DNA from: Octopus sinensis
Taxonomy: Eukaryota
NCBI RefSeq assembly: GCF_006345805.1
Contig: NW_021826500.1
Span: 1-12,611, forward strand
Length of the DNA: 12,611 bases
Direction: 5' to 3'
The notes beneath the pieces are model-generated. The model did not search any database, had not been told where the DNA came from, and saw nothing but the letters and a program-made list of their open reading frames with translations. Below, in pieces: positions 833 through 12,590 of this stretch (positions are counted from its first letter, which is position 1; every line of letters starts with the position of its first letter). The position numbers and the translations under genes were made by a program.

Positions 833-1021
833 GTGAGTCATTCTACTTTGAACAAGTGCAGTACAGTATCGAAGTATTATTTCACTGATATCCACTGACG
901 CTTATTTTTAAATCTGAATTTCCAGCATTAGCAAATATCATTTTATGAGCATTTTGAATAATGAAATTCAAAACTTAATAATAAATCTCTGAACGAGGTA
1001 TAAACAGTAGCTGCACGACAA

Positions 1022-1337
1022 TGTGAAGTATATTTGCCACTTTTTCGAGATCAGTGACATTTCGTTACTGGAAAAAGGATATATGTATTTGCATTGGGAC
1101 CCCTTTGCATCGAAGACCGGTGATTGCCGTGCGCTGATGACGAGTAAATACTCAGAAACCCGGGTCCGTGCGTATCACGCCAGGTCGACGATCGGAAGGA
1201 TGGCTTCCCTTTGCAAATACTGATAGGGCAGAGAAAGTGTGTCAATAGCCAAATGGAGATGTTCTCCTGGGACTATAAGCTATAGTAGCATTCACCCTTG
1301 GTGGTTAGCCACATTTATGTGGCAAATATACTTCACA
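1022..1337 (+). mobile_element. Hammerhead-bearing structured element, copy 1 (retrozyme/Penelope-LTR-like)
   Basis: Contains a hammerhead at 1120-1178. Colinear homology with 4114-4405 in four blocks. Bounded by a perfect 19-bp inverted repeat (1022-1040/1319-1337). Confidence 0.75.
1120..1178 (+). ncRNA. Extended type I hammerhead ribozyme (HHR1), predicted cleavage after C1166
   Basis: GTGAT-TGC-CGTGCG-CTGATGA-C.GAGT(AAAT)ACTC.A-GAAA-CCCGGG-TC-CGTGCG-T-ATCAC. Core CUGAUGA 1134-1140, GAAA 1155-1158, GUC 1164-1166. Stem I has 6 bp (2 GU), a 3x1 internal loop and 5 bp. The pair closing stem II is a C.A mismatch. Confidence 0.8.
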
Positions 1338-1464
1338 AATTCAATAATGTTATCAAGACAATTCTTAAATCGCCAACAAAGCAGTCAATGGTGAAGGTTA
1401 TATATCCTTATACAAAAGCTAGCAGTAAAGTAAATTGCCTTCCCGGGTCGTATAATTACCATCT

Positions 1465-1700
1465 CGAGTCATACAGACTTGTAAGTAACGGTTTCTTGAT
1501 TTCCATGGCGTTTATTCTCCTCCACTGGGCACGACGTCTGTCTGTCGCAGGGTTCCTCATTTTTGCCAGCTGATTGGAGTGGGGTAACATGAAAGAAATT
1601 GCTATACTCAAAACCACAACGTGTCAGCCGCTCCAGGAATCGAAACCGCGATCTAAAAGTCATGAATCCAGCACCATAATCACTAAGCCACGCGCCTACA
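1465..1700 (-). mobile_element. tRNA-derived CORE-type SINE, older diverged copy
   Basis: Clearly homologous to 4496-4744 (ctcatttttgccagc..ggaatcgaaacc..cactaagccacgcgcct). Box A/B-like motifs on the minus strand. Confidence 0.85.
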
Positions 1701-2054
1701 AACGTTAGGTGTGCATTTATATATTATCGCATTTGCAATAAACAATATTTGAAGTGAAACAAATTCAATAGTTTATTCGTGGTATTTCATCAAACTCGGG
1801 TTACATCTGATAAAGAACAGATTCGAAATAGTCAAAGCCGCCAGCATTTTATAACTTAAATATCTGTTAAGCTCTCCTTTGTCGTTAAATTATGTAAATA
1901 TTGGAAAGTTGGGGTATTGCAAACGATATGTAAATAGCGACATCTACCATCTTGTTCAAGTCATGAAAGTGAATTCACAACCAGTCCCTAAAAGTATGAA
2001 TACGCTTTCATTGCTAACGCAAGACATAGATACATAAATATTTATATATATATC

Positions 2055-2215
2055 GGATCGGAGTGATATCGAGATTAAACAGCCGAAATTGCTAAGATGA
2101 TCCGGTTCCCGACTGAAGATTAGAGGCTTCGAGTGACCCGTCTTTTTTTTTGTGTCGTCTCTTTGTGTGTTTTTTGCGTTCTTGTACCACTTTGTAATTT
2201 ATAATTTATACTTAA
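2055..2215. repeat. Probable interspersed repeat fragment, unclassified
   Basis: CpG-rich ~160-bp block flanked by TA runs, resembling a recurrent octopus repeat. Recall only; no second copy in the window. Confidence 0.35.
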
Positions 2216-2222
2216 TTTCTAA

Positions 2223-2274
<52 letters not shown>
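2223..2274. repeat. (AC)n(AT)n compound microsatellite
   Basis: Read directly from the sequence. Confidence 0.95.
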
Positions 2275-2277
<3 letters not shown>

Positions 2278-2348
2278 TTGTAGTCCCAATGCTTTCTTTT
2301 TGCAGTATATTGTTATATCATCATTATTAATTGTTATTCTGTTTACAG

Positions 2349-2424
2349 TTTTGTCCTCTGGTCCGTCCACTCACGGTCTCGACTTGAGCCCGTCTCATTT
2401 CGTTATGCTTTGGTCCCGTTCTCG
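2349..2424 (+). other. Candidate 76-nt exon
   Basis: Acceptor ttgttattctgtttacAG (2347-2348) and donor TCG|GTAAGT (2425-2430). Two frames open; coding status unknown. Confidence 0.4.
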
Positions 2425-3462
2425 GTAAGTTTATTGCCGGTGCCGAGTGGAATCAATATTATCGATAATGGCCGAAATTGTGTTTGACTTTTTCTGGCCG
2501 ATAACTGATGAGGGGTTGGTGAAATCTTCACCTCAACAACGAACAATGACGACTGTTAAGGCGTCAGCGCTACCCAACACGTTTACTTCACAACCTCGAT
2601 TGTGGCCGACCTCAATTGTGTTCGATGTGGTCAGCATTGCTCGGAGCCGGCTCACTCCATACCACCGCAAATCCAAGAAAGTATGTACGCATAGTAAGAG
2701 GTATACTAATGGACATAATACCTTGCCCTGTTTAACACTACCATACATTACCTCCGGTGCCTTTAACAGTGTCCTCCAAGTTGCATGCATTTACGCCATG
2801 TCTCCGGTTCGAAGACACATCCGCCCATAGATCTCGGAATCTTTTTGCGCCCACAGATATCTGAAACTCAGGGAAGTATCACATAAACTGCCTCTCAATC
2901 TCAGTAAAACATAAAAGCATAACAAAATAGTTAAATAACAATCTAATTTTCGTTTTGGATAGAAATGATATCCAGTCTGACTAAATAATTTTATTTTTTG
3001 AAAATAAATTTATAAATCATAGAATTCCGGCTCCTGTACATGACAGTTTTGAAATATGTATACAACATAACGAATTACCTGATTTTGCCATAACACAATT
3101 TGCAATATATAGATAGTATTATTAAATTTCCGAAGAAAAAAAATATCATTTCGTTAATAAAATAGAATTTTAAATAAAAGTTGAAGGATATGAAAACGGT
3201 GCTGTAAGGGGAAAAAAATGTTCAAGCAAGAAAAAATTGTCTGTCCAAAACTTTCTCTATTAATAGATATTTGAACCTCACGAGAGAAACGTGTAGTATA
3301 TTAGAAATAAAAATTGGTTGCATAATTAAGTTTAAGTGAAATTTATGGTTATATGAAAAATGGTAGACACCTTGGTGTTAAAGTAAAAGTTAGTATAGAA
3401 ATATAACTTTCGGGTAATAAATTTTATGAATTTACCTGTAAGACGGAACACTTGTAAAATAT

Positions 3463-3540
3463 ATGTGTGTGTATGTGTGTGTATGTATGTATGTATGTAT
3501 GTAGCAATCTGTCTAACTATCTATCTATCTCTATATATAT
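3463..3540. repeat. (GT)/(GTAT)/(CTAT) compound microsatellite
   Basis: Read directly from the sequence. Confidence 0.9.
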
Positions 3541-3986
3541 TCTCACGTAACATATTGAAGCATGTTATCCAAGGCGAGCTATTCGTGCTTAGACGTCACG
3601 GCTTTAAGCATCACCTGGCATGCTGAAAATAGCAGACTGGATCTGACTCTAAAACGACATTAAGTGTTCATAGAGTACAAGGAGAGAAGACAAAAAGACA
3701 AAATAAAACTAGTAAAAAATTACTGGATAATTCTAGATCCCGGATTTCTGACTTTGCATTTAGAAATGCTTTGCCTCATCACTGGAATATACTCAGAGAG
3801 AAACATAAATACATATATATACACAACATACGAATACTTACATATACGAACGTATACATACATATATATGCACATAAGCATCATGACCAGTTTAAAATGC
3901 CCACTTCTTAATGTCATGTGCGATATGGTTAAAACATCCCCACAGTAAATACAGTGACGAAATAAATTTAAATTTATATGAATAAG

Positions 3987-4024
3987 GATAAGATCATTAA
4001 TTTAAATTAAATAATGATCTTATC
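3987..4024. repeat. Perfect 13-bp inverted repeat (hairpin)
   Basis: gataagatcatta (3987-3999) / taatgatcttatc (4012-4024) with a 12-nt AT spacer. Confidence 0.9.
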
Positions 4025-4081
4025 AAGTGGCCAGCATGGAAATAAATTCTTTATCCTTATATATATATATATCATAATAAT

Positions 4082-4465
4082 TCTCGCCCAGAGATTTATT
4101 ATTGTTTTCGAACAGATTTTCTACGCCAGTGACTGTAGTTACTGTGAAAATCTATATATATCCAGCCGGTAGAGGAAGTCCCTCAACGAAGAGCGGTGCT
4201 TACCATACGTTGACAAGAGGCAATAACCTCGAAACCGGTCCGTGTGTAGTATCCATATCTTCGGGGAGGCTGATCTCCTTTTGCTGGCTGGCAAGGACAC
4301 CGAGATGGTGTCAGCTCTTCTGGTGACGTCGATGTTCACCTGGGGCTAAATGCATCAGTAACACCCCCACCACCCCGCCCTGACCCTAGCCACATTCAGA
4401 TGGCTGACCCCTCTTATGTTATAGAGCAGTTACTGTTTATATCTCGCCCAGAGATTTATTATTGT
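4082..4465 (+). mobile_element. Hammerhead-bearing structured element, copy 2 (retrozyme/Penelope-LTR-like)
   Basis: Contains a hammerhead at 4196-4252. Bounded by the perfect 24-bp direct repeat tctcgcccagagatttattattgt at 4082-4105 and 4442-4465 (offset 360). Homologous to copy 1. Confidence 0.8.
4196..4252 (+). ncRNA. Extended type I hammerhead ribozyme (HHR2), U3:A8 core variant, predicted cleavage after C4240
   Basis: GTGCT-TAC-CATACG-TTGACAA-GAGG(CAATAA)CCTC-GAAA-CCGG-TC-CGTGTG-T-AGTAT. Stem I 4204-4209/4241-4246, stem II 4217-4220/4227-4230, GAAA 4231-4234, GUC 4238-4240. Confidence 0.85.
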
Positions 4466-4495
4466 ATATATATATAATAATAATAATAATAATGA

Positions 4496-4744
4496 ATGCG
4501 CCCTTTTAAAGCCTAGCCAGGCTCATCCGCCAGGTTTCCCGGTTTCTATGGCGTATGTGTTCCTCAGCTGGACGGGACGCCTGTCTGTCGCAGCGTTACT
4601 CATTTTTGCCAGCCGAGTGGACTGGAGCAACGTGAAATGAAGTGTTTTGCTCAAGAACACAACGCGTCGCCCGGTCCCGGAATCGAAACCACAATCTTAC
4701 GATCATGAAGCCGACACCCTAACCACTAAGCTAGGCACGTCCAC
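4496..4744 (-). mobile_element. Near-intact tRNA-derived CORE-type SINE with (ATT)n tail at ~4475-4493
   Basis: Minus strand reads Box A TAGCTTAGTGG and Box B-like GTTTCGATTCC, then a CORE-like ttgagcaaaacacttcatttcacgttgctccagtccac segment and a simple-repeat tail. Confidence 0.9.
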
Positions 4745-5260
4745 ACACACATACACACACACACGCGCGGACATTTATTTATCTAGCTGGGATTTATCTA
4801 TGTATCTCTCCCTATTTACATATATAGATATATATGTGTGGGTGTGTGGGTATAGGCACACACAAATACATACAAACACACACATACACATATTTATATA
4901 TATATTTATGCATTCCGTGAGTGTGTGTATATGTGTGAGTGTATGTATGCATGTATGCATGTGTGTATATACATATGTATATATGTGTGTGTGTGTGTGT
5001 GTTTGTGTGTGTGTATTTGTGGTGTGTGTTGTGTGTGTGTGTTACTGTGAGAGTATGCTCATTATTTAATTAACTTATTTATCTAGCTCTGCTTATCTAT
5101 CTATCTCTCCCTATATACATATACATATACATATACATATATGTGTGTATGTGTGTGTATAGCCACCCACAAATACATACAAACACACACACGCGCACAC
5201 ACCTATACACATACATACACACGCAGACACACACCCACGCACAAGCACATATTGTTATAC
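4742..5260. repeat. Mixed (AC)/(GT)/(AT) low-complexity tract containing a diverged ~300-bp tandem duplication
   Basis: ttatttatctagct at 4775 and 5075; cacaaatacatacaaacacacaca at 4861 and 5168. Confidence 0.8.
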
Positions 5261-5323: not shown

Positions 5324-6133
5324 TTGATATAAATAGAAAAGGAAGCCATGTACACTATAATATACTGCATTAAATTTCAACGTATTTCAAGGCATATTAC
5401 ATCTCAGTTATCTTATGAAGAAGCATTCTATCTGGTTGTGTTTATAAATAGATTAAAAGAGAACATGCAGATTTTAATATCTGGCTGGCTTCTGCAAGAT
5501 TGCTTTAAATTAAAAATAAGATATGCACATCTAAAAATATGATTAGCTACTGCAATGTTGCGTCAAATTAATCTGCACGTATGAAAGCTATAATTAATTA
5601 TTGAATACAATTCGAAATATGTCAGGTTTGCGGAATTACGGAAAGAAATGAAAAAAGAAGCAGAAAATACAATCGCTAAACGTGAGATATCATTTTAAAA
5701 GAAGCGATATAAAAGAAAATTGGATTGGAAGAATGTATTTGACAAGGGAAAAGATTATGGGGGTGTCATAAACTGAAAATAAAGTGAAATAGATATATAA
5801 GATTTGGAATGTGTTTATTAATTCGTTTATGAATTTATCGCGAAACTATATTGTGTTATGTCAGAAAGAACAAGACGTACATTGACAGGATGTCAGCGAA
5901 TAATTATTGCTAATTACAATGCAAGTAGCTAAGACAGTAATCAAATATCGGAGCTGCTAGGTCACTATTTATGAGTGAACGAATATTTGATCGACATAAA
6001 TTAGCAGTATTTGAATATATTTGACGTTTGTGATCATAAAATCTGCTCTGCGGCCTCGATGTATCGCTCTCACTCGCATTCAGCGACAGCTTGTTCAAAG
6101 TGTTTCTATTATAAAATGGTAATGTGTGCGTGG

Positions 6134-6134
<1 letters not shown>

Positions 6135-6192
<58 letters not shown>
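6135..6192. repeat. (GT)n microsatellite
   Basis: Read directly from the sequence. Confidence 0.97.
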
Positions 6193-6193
<1 letters not shown>

Positions 6194-6266
6194 TATGAAG
6201 ATCACCAAGTAATACAGCAGTTGATCAGTTAAGAAAGAAAACTCATTACTATCAATTAGTAACAGG

Positions 6267-6490: not shown

Positions 6491-6558
6491 GTAAGACAAG
6501 GTGGCGGGATGTCAGAATTGCAAGCATTTCTGTGATTTCTCGCAGCTTTAGAATGAAG

Positions 6559-6634
<76 letters not shown>

Positions 6635-6710
6635 TGTATTATATATATGTATTAAATTTATACTATGATATGTAAGTACGTACACACTTATATGTGTATA
6701 TATATGTGGC
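6559..6710. repeat. (TA)n microsatellite, interrupted
   Basis: Read directly from the sequence. Confidence 0.95.
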
Positions 6711-8346: not shown

Positions 8347-8560
8347 TGCAGCAAATGGCAGAATCGTTAGCACGCCGGGTGAAATGCTTAGCAGTATTTC
8401 GTCTGCCACTACGTTCTGAGTTCAAATTCCGCTGAGGTCGACATTGCCTTTCATGCTTTCGGGTCGATAAATTAAGTACCAGTTACGCACTGGGGTCGAT
8501 ATAATCGACTTAATCCGTTTGTCTGTCTGTTTGTCCCTTCTGTGTTTAGCCCCTTGTGAG
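8347..8560 (+). mobile_element. tRNA-derived SINE, second family, well-preserved copy
   Basis: Box A-like TGGCAGAATCG and Box B GAGTTCAAATTCC, central gaggtcgacattgcctttcat..gggtcgataaattaagtaccag domain; two homologues in the window. Confidence 0.9.

Positions 8561-8650: not shown

Positions 8651-8698
<48 letters not shown>
8651..8698. repeat. (TA)n microsatellite
   Basis: Read directly from the sequence. Confidence 0.97.
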
Positions 8699-8703
<5 letters not shown>

Positions 8704-8991
8704 TAAAATAATATTGCCAACTAAATGTGGAGATTCTATAGAGGACGAGCTACTGTTGATTTTAAACCACAGGAGGATATTTCTTCCAGCTGGCCAACGA
8801 CACGCTGTCTGTGTCTGATTAATATTTCCGAGGGAAAAGAAAAAGGTGTATCCTTTGCTCTACTTCAGAAAGAGAAAAATAAAAGAAAAGAACCAGAGCA
8901 TATCAGGATACTTGGGAGAGGTGATTAACATTTCGAGACTTTGCTCTTCAGCAGAAAGGTTACCATCACATCCACTTTTTGGACTCACGAT

Positions 8992-9040
8992 ATACATACA
9001 TACATACATACAGATCTTCATACATACATACATACACGCA
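8992..9040. repeat. (TACA)n microsatellite, interrupted
   Basis: Read directly from the sequence. Confidence 0.9.
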
Positions 9041-9045
9041 CGCGT

Positions 9046-9265
9046 GGCGTTTTGTATTTTTGCAAAGTAATACATTTTACTTAACTCCAGTCCTCACAAT
9101 TGTAACTGGGTAAATCTGCGAGCGACCTTCCGATCGGATGACGGTGCCGAGAGGTGGTAAGAAATGTCGGCCTGTTCGCATAATTAAAACGGTGCGGAGT
9201 ACATTGTGACCAGCGATGTGTAACAACATAGAATAGTCTCTTCTCGGTAATGTCATCCTATGATA
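9046..9265 (+). mobile_element. 5'-truncated CORE-type SINE with a different 3' body
   Basis: ggcgttttgtattttgcaaagtaatacattttacttaactccagtc aligns loosely with the CORE-like segment of 4496-4744 (reverse complement). The downstream gtaagaaatgtcggcctg..cattgtgaccagcgatgtg resembles a recalled octopus repeat. Confidence 0.5.
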
Positions 9266-10054: not shown

Positions 10055-10273
10055 AGTCCTTTTGTACTCTAAGCACAAGGCGTGGAATTTTCACTGGAGG
10101 GGACTAGTCGATTGCATCGACCCCAGTGTTCAACTGGTACTTATTTTTCATCGACACAGAAAATATTAAAAGCAAAGTTTACCTCGGCGGAACTGGACCA
10201 CAGGGCGAAATGGACGGACGAAATGTCGCTAAGCAATTTGCTCGGCATAATAACCATTCTTCTAGCTCGCCAC
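10055..10273 (-). mobile_element. tRNA-derived SINE, second family, diverged copy
   Basis: tcgattgcatcgaccccagtgttcaactggtacttattt..aaagtttacctcggcggaac..gctcgccac is the reverse complement of the 8347-8560 family. Confidence 0.85.
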
Positions 10274-10275
10274 TC

Positions 10276-10377
10276 TGATGATGATGATGACGACGACGAC
10301 GACGACGATGATGATGATGATGATGATGATGATGACGATGATGATGGCGTTGATGATGATGATGGTGATGATGATGG

Positions 10378-10410
<33 letters not shown>

Positions 10411-10494
10411 CGACGACGACGACGATGATGGTGATGTCGATGACGATGATGAGCAGGAAGAGAAGAATTGGTGGCGATGATGATGATGATGATG
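10276..10494. repeat. (GAT/GAC/GGT)n trinucleotide microsatellite
   Basis: Read directly; explains the poly-D/poly-M/poly-S ORFs. Confidence 0.95.
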
Positions 10495-10631
10495 GGAAAT
10501 AATAATCAAGTTGTACATGATCATGGTGGAAGTTGTCGTGGTGATGACGGTGATGGTGATGTTTTCGGAGGTGGTGGTCTTGTTGAGTAACAGAAAGAAT
10601 GAAACGTCGGTAATGGCGGCAGTTGCGTAAG

Positions 10632-10632
10632 G

Positions 10633-10663
<31 letters not shown>

Positions 10664-10790
10664 GATGATGAAGGAGTGAGGTTGTGGCCGGTGGCGTTGA
10701 CTATGCCGATGCTGATGATGATGATGATGAGCATGATGATGATTGTAATCATCGTCATCAATATCATCATCATCAGCAGCAGCAACATTA
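10632..10790. repeat. (GAT)n/(CAT)n/(CAG)n degenerate trinucleotide repeats
   Basis: Read directly from the sequence. Confidence 0.9.
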
Positions 10791-10975: not shown

Positions 10976-11044
10976 TGAAAGATACACAACATGAAAATCA
11001 ATCAGGAGACAAAGATGGAAAATGAAGTGAGTGGTTTTACATTC

Positions 11045-11160
11045 ATATACACATATATAGATGTGTGTGTGTGAGTGTGTGTGTGCGTGTGTGTGAGTGC
11101 GGATGTGTGTGACAAACTATACGCACACATTTGTGTAAATATATATTATAATGTAGTAGG

Positions 11161-11201
<41 letters not shown>

Positions 11202-11296
11202 TAGGTATATGTATGTATACTGGCACATCCCTTCACATAGATATATTTATACGTTTATGTTGTAGAACGAGAATATATGGATTGTATACGCATATA

Positions 11297-11339
<43 letters not shown>

Positions 11340-11452
11340 AAAATAGATATACATATATATACGTATATATATGCATGTATATACAGATATATGTACATAT
11401 ATATATACGTATGTATATGTATATATACAAATAAATATGTACATGTATATAC

Positions 11453-11512
<60 letters not shown>

Positions 11513-11570
11513 TATATATATATGTATGTATGTATATATACATACGTACATACATGCACACATATATTTG
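11045..11570. repeat. Large (TA)/(GT)/(TATG) low-complexity tract
   Basis: Read directly; explains the YI/IY-rich ORFs. Confidence 0.95.
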
Positions 11571-11874
11571 TAAACACTGTCACTGTTCATGTGTATGTAT
11601 GTGTTGCAGTGAATGCCCGTACGTGAATGTGCGATATTATAAGGACCTGCTAATCCCCTTAATCTTAAAGATACACGAACGCGCAATAGTCCGTATTATA
11701 GAGAAGTAATTTATACTCCCATGTCTCTCTCGCTGTGTGTGTTTGCGTGTCTTTGATGCGCTGCGCGTGCATCTGTTATACGTAGTGGCTCGCTCGCACG
11801 CGCTCTGAAATGCATTCGTTATCGTCAATGTATTTATCTTCATTAATGCATGTTGATGAATATACATAAGTGCA

Positions 11875-12303
11875 TATATTTACATATATATATATATATA
11901 TATATATATTCGCACCAATACTCCTTATGTAACCGCACACAAACACACACATAAACGCATACATATATATCGATATATCGATGTATGTATTTATGTATAT
12001 ATGTATGTATGTATGTATGCATGTATGTATATATATATATTTATAAAGTCGGATAGATATAGATATATAGATATGTATGTATATATGAGTGCGTATGTGT
12101 GTATGCACGTGTCTGTATGTATTTGTTTAGGCATTTGCGTCCTTGTGTATTTGTACAAGAGAGGCAGAAAGACAGGCAGATACATATTACATATGCATAT
12201 GTGTATATATATGTATATATCTCTCTCTTGCTCCCCCCTCTCTCTCTATACATATATATGTATGTATGAATGTATATTTATATATATGTATAAGTATGTA
12301 TGA

Positions 12304-12334
<31 letters not shown>

Positions 12335-12590
12335 CAAACATATATATATATACATACTTATGTATATATAGAGAGACAGAGAGGGAGAGAGAGAGAGATC
12401 TTTTAGGTATTTCTACGTGTATGAAAGTGTACATCAGTCAATGTGCCTGCGTTCCGTTTTGTGTGAATGTGCTTCTATACGGTATGCCTGTGTGTGTCCG
12501 CTGCCTGTGTGTTTGTATGTCTGTTAGTGTGTGTGTGTTTGTGTGCGCATGCTTGTGTGTGCATGTGTGTGTGTCTGTGTGTCTGTCTAT
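11875..12590. repeat. Mixed (TA)/(TATG)/(GA)/(GT) low-complexity tract
   Basis: Read directly from the sequence. Confidence 0.9.

Follow-up and report, generated by a model that had tools for sequence, protein, structure and literature searches.

A hammerhead-bearing, probably retrozyme-like repeat family in a contig of Octopus sinensis

What are the two segments of some 300 nucleotides (nt) that appear to carry a hammerhead ribozyme each, within a 12,611-nt stretch of the Octopus sinensis genome (contig NW_021826500.1; the whole stretch is hereafter the window)? A first reading, made from the letters alone, had taken them for two diverged members of a selected, structured, non-coding mobile RNA family. 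We read positions 900-4600 directly and compared the whole window with itself using blastn and nhmmer. The window holds three insertions of one family of about 300-360 nt, two of full length and one truncated at its 5' end, together with a 64-nt inverted fragment. We consider it probable that the copies are relics, inserted as single units, of a retrozyme-like, non-autonomous and non-coding hammerhead element mobilised by Penelope-like elements (PLEs). The insertions are as follows.

1041 to 1337, plus strand: copy 1, full-length body of 297 nt, colinear with copy 2, with a short 3' end lacking the tail
4106 to 4465, plus strand: copy 2, full-length body followed by a tail of about 46 nt (4419-4465); the unit between repeats measures 360 nt
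8698 to 8839, minus strand: copy 3, truncated at the 5' end, 3' domain only and no ribozyme, with a short 3' end; it adjoins a (TA)n tract at 8651-8697
977 to 1040, minus strand: inverted 5'-truncated fragment of 64 nt, comprising the terminal hairpin's 3' arm, a further 14 nt and the tail of about 46 nt

Copies 1 and 2 are colinear homologues with 62% identity (nhmmer E 7e-14 over about 285 nt). The blastn self-comparison aligns 1042-1290 with 4117-4363 at 61.9% over 260 columns (E 2e-10), and both searches place the colinearity noted earlier far beyond chance. The identities then given for two blocks, 22/30 between 1111-1140 and 4187-4216 and 25/33 between 1258-1290 and 4331-4363, agree with our recount. 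Both members of the earlier pair are real, but copy 3 and the inverted fragment had been overlooked. Copy 3 matches only the 3' half of copy 1 (blastn 64.6% over 147 columns, E 4.5e-9; nhmmer E 4e-7 to 2e-8). The inverted fragment is joined head-to-head to copy 1, and the reverse complement of 977-1025 corresponds to the copy 2 tail at 4416-4464 (blastn 84% over 45 nt; nhmmer E 4e-6).

Does each full copy carry a ribozyme? The following parts can be recognised in the two copies.

1120 to 1178, plus strand: copy 1, type I hammerhead, matching our descriptor in a relaxed form
1120-1124 and 1128-1133, plus strand: copy 1, helix I, paired with 1167-1172 and 1174-1178
1134-1140, plus strand: copy 1, core CUGAUGA
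1141-1154, plus strand: copy 1, helix II, with C.A at 10.1-11.1
1155-1157, plus strand: copy 1, GAA
1158-1165, plus strand: copy 1, palindromic helix III ACCCGGGU
1166, plus strand: copy 1, C17, with predicted cleavage between 1166 and 1167
4195 to 4253, plus strand: copy 2, type I hammerhead, matching the strict descriptor
4210-4216, plus strand: copy 2, core UUGACAA, a U3-A8 variant
4217-4230, plus strand: copy 2, helix II, GAGG/CCUC
4231-4233, plus strand: copy 2, GAA
4234-4239, plus strand: copy 2, helix III ACCGGU
4240, plus strand: copy 2, C17, with predicted cleavage between 4240 and 4241

The copy 1 motif reads CGUGCG, CUGAUGA, CGAG-UAAAUA-CUCA, GAA, ACCCGGGU, C, CGUGCG and that of copy 2 reads CAUACG, UUGACAA, GAGG-CAAUAA-CCUC, GAA, ACCGGU, C, CGUGUG. 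Their layout is shared: helices I and II have 6 and 4 bp, the latter with a loop of 6 nt, and helix III has 2 bp and a palindromic loop. From ACCGGU to ACCCGGGU, helix III has gained one C and one G while keeping its palindrome. The conserved core (C3 U4 G5 A6 N7 G8 A9, G12 A13 A14, A15.1-U16.1 and H17) is found in both copies, in copy 2 by way of a U3-A8 swap, and the helices are arranged around it as in type I ribozymes, with helix I open; the exception is the C.A at 10.1-11.1 of copy 1. The G10.1-C11.1 pair is normally conserved in hammerheads, and its replacement probably weakens the copy 1 ribozyme. The first reading needs correction here: copy 2 has UUGACAA in place of CUGAUGA, and a mismatch lies in helix II of copy 1. 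We read UUGACAA as a joint C3/G8 to U3/A8 change and not as a broken CUGAUGA. The U3-A8 covariation is documented in PLE hammerheads, with about 1,300 descriptor matches in Schistosoma, and was first seen in a PLE hammerhead of Cercyon (PMC4209133).

A descriptor combining a 6-bp helix I, CUGANGA or UUGANAA, a 4-bp helix II, GAA, a palindromic A..U helix III and H17 matches the window at 1134-1166 and 4210-4240 only, both on the plus strand; it finds no hammerhead on the minus strand of the window. Scanning 2000 dinucleotide-preserving shuffles of the window returned 0 matches. Rfam searches on slices of 63-65 nt gave only sub-threshold hammerhead matches. The better placed of these is copy 2 with Hammerhead_HH9 (RF02275), at 24.4 bits and E 1.2e-4, short of the gathering score of 52; the alignment spans loop 1 (UUAC), the 6-bp helix I, the core, helix II and GAAACC..GGUCC, and helix II is aligned as 4 bp with a CAAnAA loop. 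Together, the motif reading, the descriptor and this alignment support the earlier proposal of a type I hammerhead in both elements, with a helix III that is short and palindromic.

Such a helix III bears on how the ribozyme would work. In the canonical metazoan type I form described by Cervera and de la Pena, a helix I of 6 bp is combined with a helix II of 4 bp, a palindromic loop of 2-4 nt caps the 1-2 bp of helix III, and activity is expected in the dimer (PMC4209133). With RNAcofold, the minimum-energy homodimer of each 59-nt motif is a double hammerhead with an intermolecular helix III, with -38.9 kcal/mol in copy 1, compared with 2 x -13.8, and -37.5 kcal/mol in copy 2, compared with 2 x -16.3.

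The ribozyme is the tip of a larger structure, a rod of about 40 base pairs present in both full copies.

1085 to 1220, plus strand: copy 1, hammerhead domain, with outer stem 1085-1099/1206-1220 and helix I rod, from minimum free energy (MFE) helices and RNAalifold
4162 to 4291, plus strand: copy 2, hammerhead domain, with outer stem 4162-4176/4276-4291 and rod, from MFE helices and RNAalifold

In the MFE folds of both copies, helix I is extended as an imperfect rod closed by the outer stem, and the outer stems pair in both, as had been claimed. The fold z-score is -2.8 on the plus strand and -1.2 on the minus strand for copy 1, and -3.2 versus -0.1 for copy 2. Using a MAFFT alignment, fitted to no structure, RNAalifold gives the ribozyme domain -35.2 kcal/mol against a column-shuffle null of -11.4 +/- 3.2 (z = -7.4; on the minus strand z = -3.3), and its consensus has 38 pairs, 11 of them changed on both sides and 0 broken. 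A structure-guided alignment of 50 pairs keeps 41 in both copies and contains 5 one-sided changes and 14 double compensations, of which eight fall in the outer stem, two in helix II, two in helix I, one in the rod and one at C3-G8/U3-A8. Permuting the 3' partners in this alignment yields P <= 5e-5, and sliding the partners by 1-3 columns leaves only 8-13 pairs. Since its G.U cells exceed its A.C cells by 9 to 1, the RNA is read from the plus strand. For two sequences, this is strong evidence that compensatory changes have maintained rod and ribozyme in copies whose identity is no more than 62%.

The remaining parts of the element also form hairpins.

1052 to 1070, plus strand: copy 1, 5' hairpin CAGUGAC/GUUACUG, including a G.U pair
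4127 to 4144, plus strand: copy 2, 5' hairpin CAGUGAC/GUUACUG, identical in stem sequence to that of copy 1
1227 to 1323, plus strand: copy 1, 3' domain hairpins at 1227-1243, 1255-1267 and, terminal, 1308-1323
4296 to 4405, plus strand: copy 2, 3' domain hairpins at 4296-4312, 4322-4340 and, terminal, 4388-4405

The pattern CAGTGAC-N4/5-GTTACTG occurs in the window only at 1052 and 4127. The identical stem reported for this hairpin is there in both copies, but it starts 113-114 nt before the cleavage site and not about 125 nt. Our check of the terminal hairpin TAGCCACATT returned the distances given before, 140 and 147 nt past C1166 and C4240. Covariation in the 3' domain is not significant (two-copy RNAalifold z = -0.9; three-copy covariation term +0.11). 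The three-copy consensus keeps 1227-1243 and the terminal hairpin, mostly through invariant pairs, and the hairpin at 1255-1267 appears in the single-copy fold only, its GGAGA/UCUCC stem being absent from the three-copy RNAalifold prediction. The covariation proposed there, GGAGA/TCTCC versus GGTGA/TCACC, does contain one compensated pair, but it hinges on an alignment that MAFFT does not choose. The covarying structure first suggested for the whole element is therefore strong in the hammerhead and rod domain, on the plus strand only, and weak in the 3' domain. Likewise, the idea of a selected, structured, non-coding mobile RNA family gains from the dispersed insertions and from the plus-strand compensations, but the covariation that it invokes covers the ribozyme and rod domain and not the whole of about 300 nt.

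Could similarity and hairpins have arisen by chance in repeat-rich DNA? No Rfam model is matched at gathering level and the window is full of low-complexity hairpins, as this explanation would have it. Against it stand the nhmmer E-value of 7e-14 between the copies, the RNAalifold z of -7.4, the 0 descriptor matches in 2000 shuffles, and a GC content of 0.54 in the hammerhead domains, which form GC-rich islands in a window of 0.36. We give chance a negligible probability, and the homology search, the RNAalifold result and the descriptor null effectively refute it.

How did the copies get where they are? Their junctions can be read directly and include two further features.

4082 to 4105 and 4442 to 4465, plus strand: 24-bp direct repeat that places the end of the tail upstream of copy 2, a partial tandem or terminal redundancy
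964 to 971 and 1337 to 1344, unstranded: candidate target-site duplication AAATTCAA of 7-8 bp, read from the sequence

Both full copies start at the same point, TTT(TT)CGA (TTTTTCGA at 1041 and TTTCGA at 4106), and at this start each abuts a piece of the element's own 3' end. At copy 2 the piece is the 24-bp repeat; because the same sequence also lies, inverted, beside copy 1, it is part of the element and not of the target. Two classes of 3' end can be distinguished: copies 1 and 3 stop 14-17 nt past the terminal hairpin, while copy 2 and the inverted fragment extend about 46 nt further, to ...CAGAGATTTATTATT, so that the tail is present at two of the four 3' ends. The inverted fragment and copy 1 are bracketed together by the candidate duplication AAATTCAA, (A)AATTCAA, with five extra bases (972-976) by the end of the tail; in AT-rich DNA, a match of 7-8 bp is only suggestive of a target duplication. 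Copy 2 sits in (TA)n(TAA)n, which makes a target duplication unreadable there.

These junctions closely recall what is known of PLEs. Insertions of PLEs show strong 5' truncation, partial tandems with pseudo-long terminal repeats (pLTRs), an inverted 5'-truncated copy beside the 5' end and an optional tail of 30-40 bp at one end, and some clades prefer (TA)n (PMC8557442); the tail is the stretch between two adjacent internal start sites of the reverse transcriptase (RT), and both DNA strands are primed (PMC11167929). Every element of the signature is found in the window: copy 3 is truncated at its 5' end, copy 2 has the 24-bp repeat of a partial tandem, copy 1 has the 64-nt inverted fragment beside it, and the optional tail occurs at 2/4 ends.

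The tail contains CAGUUACUG (4427-4435), which repeats the 3' arm of the 5' hairpin (4138-4146). In the minimum-energy fold of copy 2 this stretch pairs with CAGUGACUG of the 5' hairpin (4127-4135), closing the RNA end to end. The notion that the tail duplicates the head of the element was dropped, the local alignment scoring 11 with a shuffle P of about 0.05.

A different view of the ends would make the element a miniature inverted-repeat or foldback DNA transposon, in which the hammerhead-like interior is fortuitous. Copy 1 is indeed bounded by a perfect 19-bp inverted repeat (1022-1040/1319-1337), and the whole element is highly self-complementary, 1080-1225 matching its own minus strand in blastn. 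The matching ends noticed at the outset are not alike, however: copy 2 lacks a terminal inverted repeat and has the 24-bp direct repeat instead, and the repeat of copy 1 belongs to the 64-nt inverted copy of the 3' end, tail included. Neither shared terminal inverted repeats nor a duplication of fixed length, as expected of DNA transposons, were found. In addition, the excess of G.U over A.C and the strand-dependent fold z-scores point to an RNA structure rather than a DNA palindrome, the descriptor has no match in the 2000 shuffles, and copy 3 is truncated in the manner of retroelements. Since the inverted 3' fragment explains the 19-bp repeat, we rejected this explanation, which is extremely improbable.

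If PLEs are involved, are the copies simply pieces of one? They might be the 3'-terminal pLTR part of an autonomous PLE, seen as heavily 5'-truncated copies. In PLEs the hammerhead does sit in the pLTR, close to the 3' end, and strong 5' truncation affects most copies (PMC8557442, PMC4209133), as it clearly does copy 3; a tail, an inverted copy and a partial tandem are likewise found in PLEs; and Xenopus retrozymes are sister to PLE pLTRs (bioRxiv 10.64898/2026.07.22.740005). But copies 1 and 2 share their start (1041 and 4106), where both abut pieces of tail, and random truncation would not produce this twice. There is no homology upstream of this start, the ribozyme is of the canonical loop-loop retrozyme type and not of the minimal PLE type, and no remnant of an RT or endonuclease was seen in the window. 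Outside low-complexity DNA, no stop-free stretch exceeds 145 amino acids (aa), and ten of the longer ones, chosen for a Pfam search, matched no domain, RT and endonuclease included. An autonomous PLE, with an open reading frame (ORF) for a telomerase-like RT and a GIY-YIG endonuclease, is not seen in these stretches, and we consider a PLE fragment unlikely. The units of 297 nt and 360 nt are non-coding, with no ORF that has a homologue or a domain. With one type I hammerhead each, they fall within the size of animal retrozyme units without LTRs (about 170-400 bp, up to about 970), and apart from the 24-bp terminal redundancy at copy 2 they occur in the window as single units, with no tandem array.

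The elements have repeats for neighbours. Copies of one tRNA-derived short interspersed nuclear element (SINE), 76% identical, lie at 1441-1719 and 4533-4746 on the minus strand, with a weak one at 9040-9159. A SINE follows each full element at 70-150 nt downstream, in the same relative orientation and across non-homologous intervening DNA. Sites resembling a B box, GTTTCGATTCC, are found in the SINEs at 1636-1646 and 4679-4689. None occurs inside the hammerhead elements, and ARAGORN recognises no tRNA; no separate search was made for an A box, and on these grounds the elements themselves are not tRNA-derived SINEs.

The shared neighbour raises the question of an old segmental duplication of ribozyme element and downstream SINE, in which case the element could be a host non-coding RNA gene. 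In favour are the same minus-strand SINE 70-150 nt downstream of each full copy and the similar spacing of the SINEs (3043 nt) and of the elements (3065 nt). The intervals between element and SINE and the outer flanks are nevertheless non-homologous, the SINEs are 76% identical when the elements are 62%, a third copy lies 4 kb away on the other strand, and the junctions hold pieces of the element's own tail. Moreover, 14 double compensations cannot build up by neutral drift of a dead duplicated locus. We judge a duplication very improbable and rejected it for the unrelated intervening DNA and the unequal divergence (76% vs 62%).

We are thus brought back to relic insertions of a retrozyme-like element mobilised by PLEs, for which the following scheme may be proposed. 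The RNA, read from the plus strand, folds into a 5' hairpin, a long imperfect rod extending helix I of a canonical metazoan type I hammerhead, and a 3' domain ending in a hairpin. Because helix III is limited to 2 bp and a palindromic loop (ACCCGGGU in copy 1, ACCGGU in copy 2), activity would be expected chiefly from the dimer, in which two units, in tandem or on two transcripts, would pair through helix III and cut after GUC (C1166, C4240). Multimeric transcripts would then release RNAs of unit length, which the host tRNA ligase could circularise, as in animal retrozymes. A PLE reverse transcriptase with its GIY-YIG endonuclease may have made cDNA copies from either of two start sites near the RNA's 3' end, giving rise to copies that carry the tail of about 46 nt, as do copy 2 and the inverted fragment, or that lack it, as do copies 1 and 3. 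The inverted truncated fragment could stem from priming on both DNA strands, the 24-bp terminal repeat from run-on copying or from the formation of a partial tandem, and the 5'-truncated copy from early termination; the targets would often have been (TA)n. The compensatory changes must have arisen in active, transcribed master lineages, because inserted copies drift. The copies seen here are old single-unit relics; each would cut once at most and release no unit RNA alone. Circular RNA, dimeric cleavage and current activity are all predicted from this scheme by analogy with its relatives.

We may also hypothesize that the elements form a distinct, mainly monomeric and SINE-like hammerhead class, which spreads as single units without tandem arrays or circular RNA. 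Its recognition module for the PLE RT would be made of the rod (about 40 base pairs, extending helix I), the invariant CAGUGAC/GUUACUG hairpin and the 3' end with two start sites. This more specific proposal is quite unlikely; if true, it would provide a direct sequence-level link, in an invertebrate, between retrozymes and internal initiation by the PLE RT.

Several observations weigh against the retrozyme-like interpretation or limit its reach. Neither ribozyme is fully canonical, copy 1 having the C.A at 10.1-11.1 and copy 2 the U3-A8 core, and activity is predicted only. The descriptor was composed after the sites had been seen and is a chance check, not a blind discovery. The comparison with Rfam hammerhead models that the sequence-only reading had recommended gave no match at gathering level with any of them: searches of the whole window at E<=1 and of 400 nt around copy 1 at E<=10 returned no hammerhead, and the copy 1 slice matched Hammerhead_1 at 11.8 bits (E 2.4; gathering score 34) in a mis-registered alignment. 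The covariation statistics rest on two sequences, with two full copies and one partial copy available, and the count of 14 compensated pairs depends on an alignment fitted by hand. Further copies were not found in pattern scans of metagenome and viral sequences or in ORF protein searches: a 29-base pattern had 0 matches in a metagenome collection, a 17-base pattern had 84 metagenome matches and 1 viral match, none with a hammerhead box in a workable position, neither the spurious ORF of copy 2 nor that of a SINE had a match in protein searches, and exact look-ups of two window ORFs returned no record. When a covariance model of the two hammerhead domains was run on the window with filters off, it recovered only its two training copies and microsatellite hairpins. 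As to PLE mobilisation, no RT or endonuclease remnant was met in the stretches searched, although shorter degraded remnants are possible; the tail, at about 46 nt, exceeds the published 30-40 bp; adjacency to (TA)n, which is very frequent in the window, may be due to chance; and the (TA)n(TAA)n by copy 2 may belong to the neighbouring SINE as its tail.

Other repeats in the window can be described briefly. A second SINE-like repeat at about 8400-8560 on the plus strand, with a sequence GGTTCAAATTCCGCTGAGGTCGAC resembling a tRNA T arm, adjoins copy 3. Just upstream of copy 2, at 3975-4065, there is a nested inverted repeat, GATAAGATCATTA..TAATGATCTTATC within AATAAGGATAA..TTATCCTTAT, which gives rise to a sub-threshold 'mir-360' match in Rfam and may be a small foldback element. 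A long imperfect trinucleotide tract of (GAT)n/(GAC)n and relatives occupies 10250-10790; on both strands it contains open frames for poly-Asp and poly-Ser that reach 215-218 aa, but it is of low complexity and carries no evidence of a gene. Dense (TA)n, (TG)n and (TATG)n microsatellites lie at 2220-2280, 3460-3500, 4780-5240, 6100-6200, 6550-6660, 8651-8697 and 11030-12400, and account for nearly all of the 95 sub-threshold Rfam matches (mir-297, mir-466, mir-3149 and others) as well as for the weak covariance-model matches.

Where does the family stand among known systems? Its closest counterparts are the animal non-LTR retrozymes (Cervera & de la Pena 2020, PMC7229834; Li, Clavereau & Pollet 2026, bioRxiv 10.64898/2026.07.22.740005). 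These too are non-coding units of about 170-400 bp with one canonical type I hammerhead per unit, a palindromic helix III that favours dimeric cleavage and a highly structured RNA; they are known in molluscs (mussel) and other phyla, have single-unit genomic copies beside tandem arrays and are linked to PLEs. They are reported to derive from PLEs, to be non-autonomous and to have units that average about 300 bp, and the proportion of single units varies from 0 to 1 among families (bioRxiv 10.64898/2026.07.22.740005). The single central ribozyme and the matching ends had been thought to separate our elements from classical retrozymes. This distinction does not hold: single units are normal among retrozymes (bioRxiv 10.64898/2026.07.22.740005), and the ends fit the anatomy of PLE insertions (PMC8557442, PMC11167929). 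Differences lie in the window showing single units only, in a GC content of 0.46-0.49, slightly over the <0.45 of the class, in circularity and self-cleavage that are predicted only, and in the PLE-type tail, inverted copy and partial tandem junctions that can be read at the window copies.

We found no description of this family's sequence in the literature searched, where the only mention of cephalopod hammerheads is the annotation of the giant squid, with 235 Rfam hammerhead 1 loci (PMC6962438); a paper on repeats in Octopus vulgaris lists 31 PLE families and does not mention ribozymes. As to the novelty in cephalopods that had been left open, type I loci as such had already been counted in the giant squid. 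If the family is a cephalopod one, it would extend the described retrozyme-like elements to that class. The locus offers a ribozyme-bearing non-autonomous retroelement whose insertion junctions are readable base by base, and the optional tail, inverted truncated copy and partial tandem form a signature recently tied to internal initiation by the PLE RT. PLE-type junctions at single loci support the view, already put forward, that the retrozymes of animals derive from PLEs and are non-autonomous. One family here displays both core variants, C3-G8 and U3-A8, side by side.

Hammerheads of PLE pLTRs (PMC4209133, PMC8557442, PMC11167929) resemble ours in being of type I and near the 3' part, in their palindromic helix III and U3-A8 core, in forming families rich in compensatory changes and in their insertion anatomy, (TA)n targets included. 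In contrast, the window elements have no RT/GIY-YIG ORF, measure about 300-360 nt and not 3-4 kb, have a tail of about 46 nt instead of 30-40 nt and a ribozyme of the canonical 6-bp/4-bp loop-loop type; the minimal PLE variant has a long helix II, an extra nucleotide after A9 and no helix III.

The Rfam model nearest to copy 2, Hammerhead_HH9, describes a conserved single-copy intronic ribozyme of amniotes, whereas the window family is a dispersed repeat; copy 2 departs from it by a helix III reduced to ACCGGU and a U3-A8 core, and reaches less than half of its gathering score (24.4 against 52 bits). Along with HH9, the Schistosoma Sm-alpha type hammerhead is among the known systems closest to the family.

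Plant LTR retrozymes and viroid-like circular RNAs (PMC4918200) are likewise non-coding and non-autonomous, with the ribozyme set in a rod-like or branched RNA, and propagate through self-cleaved RNA. The plant elements differ in having type III hammerheads in true LTRs, a length of 600-1000 nt and Ty3/gypsy machinery; viroid-like RNAs replicate from RNA to RNA and usually have ribozymes in both polarities, and the minus strand of the window has none. The family is thus an expected relative of known retrozyme and Penelope-associated elements, and the picture that we have of such elements is left unchanged.

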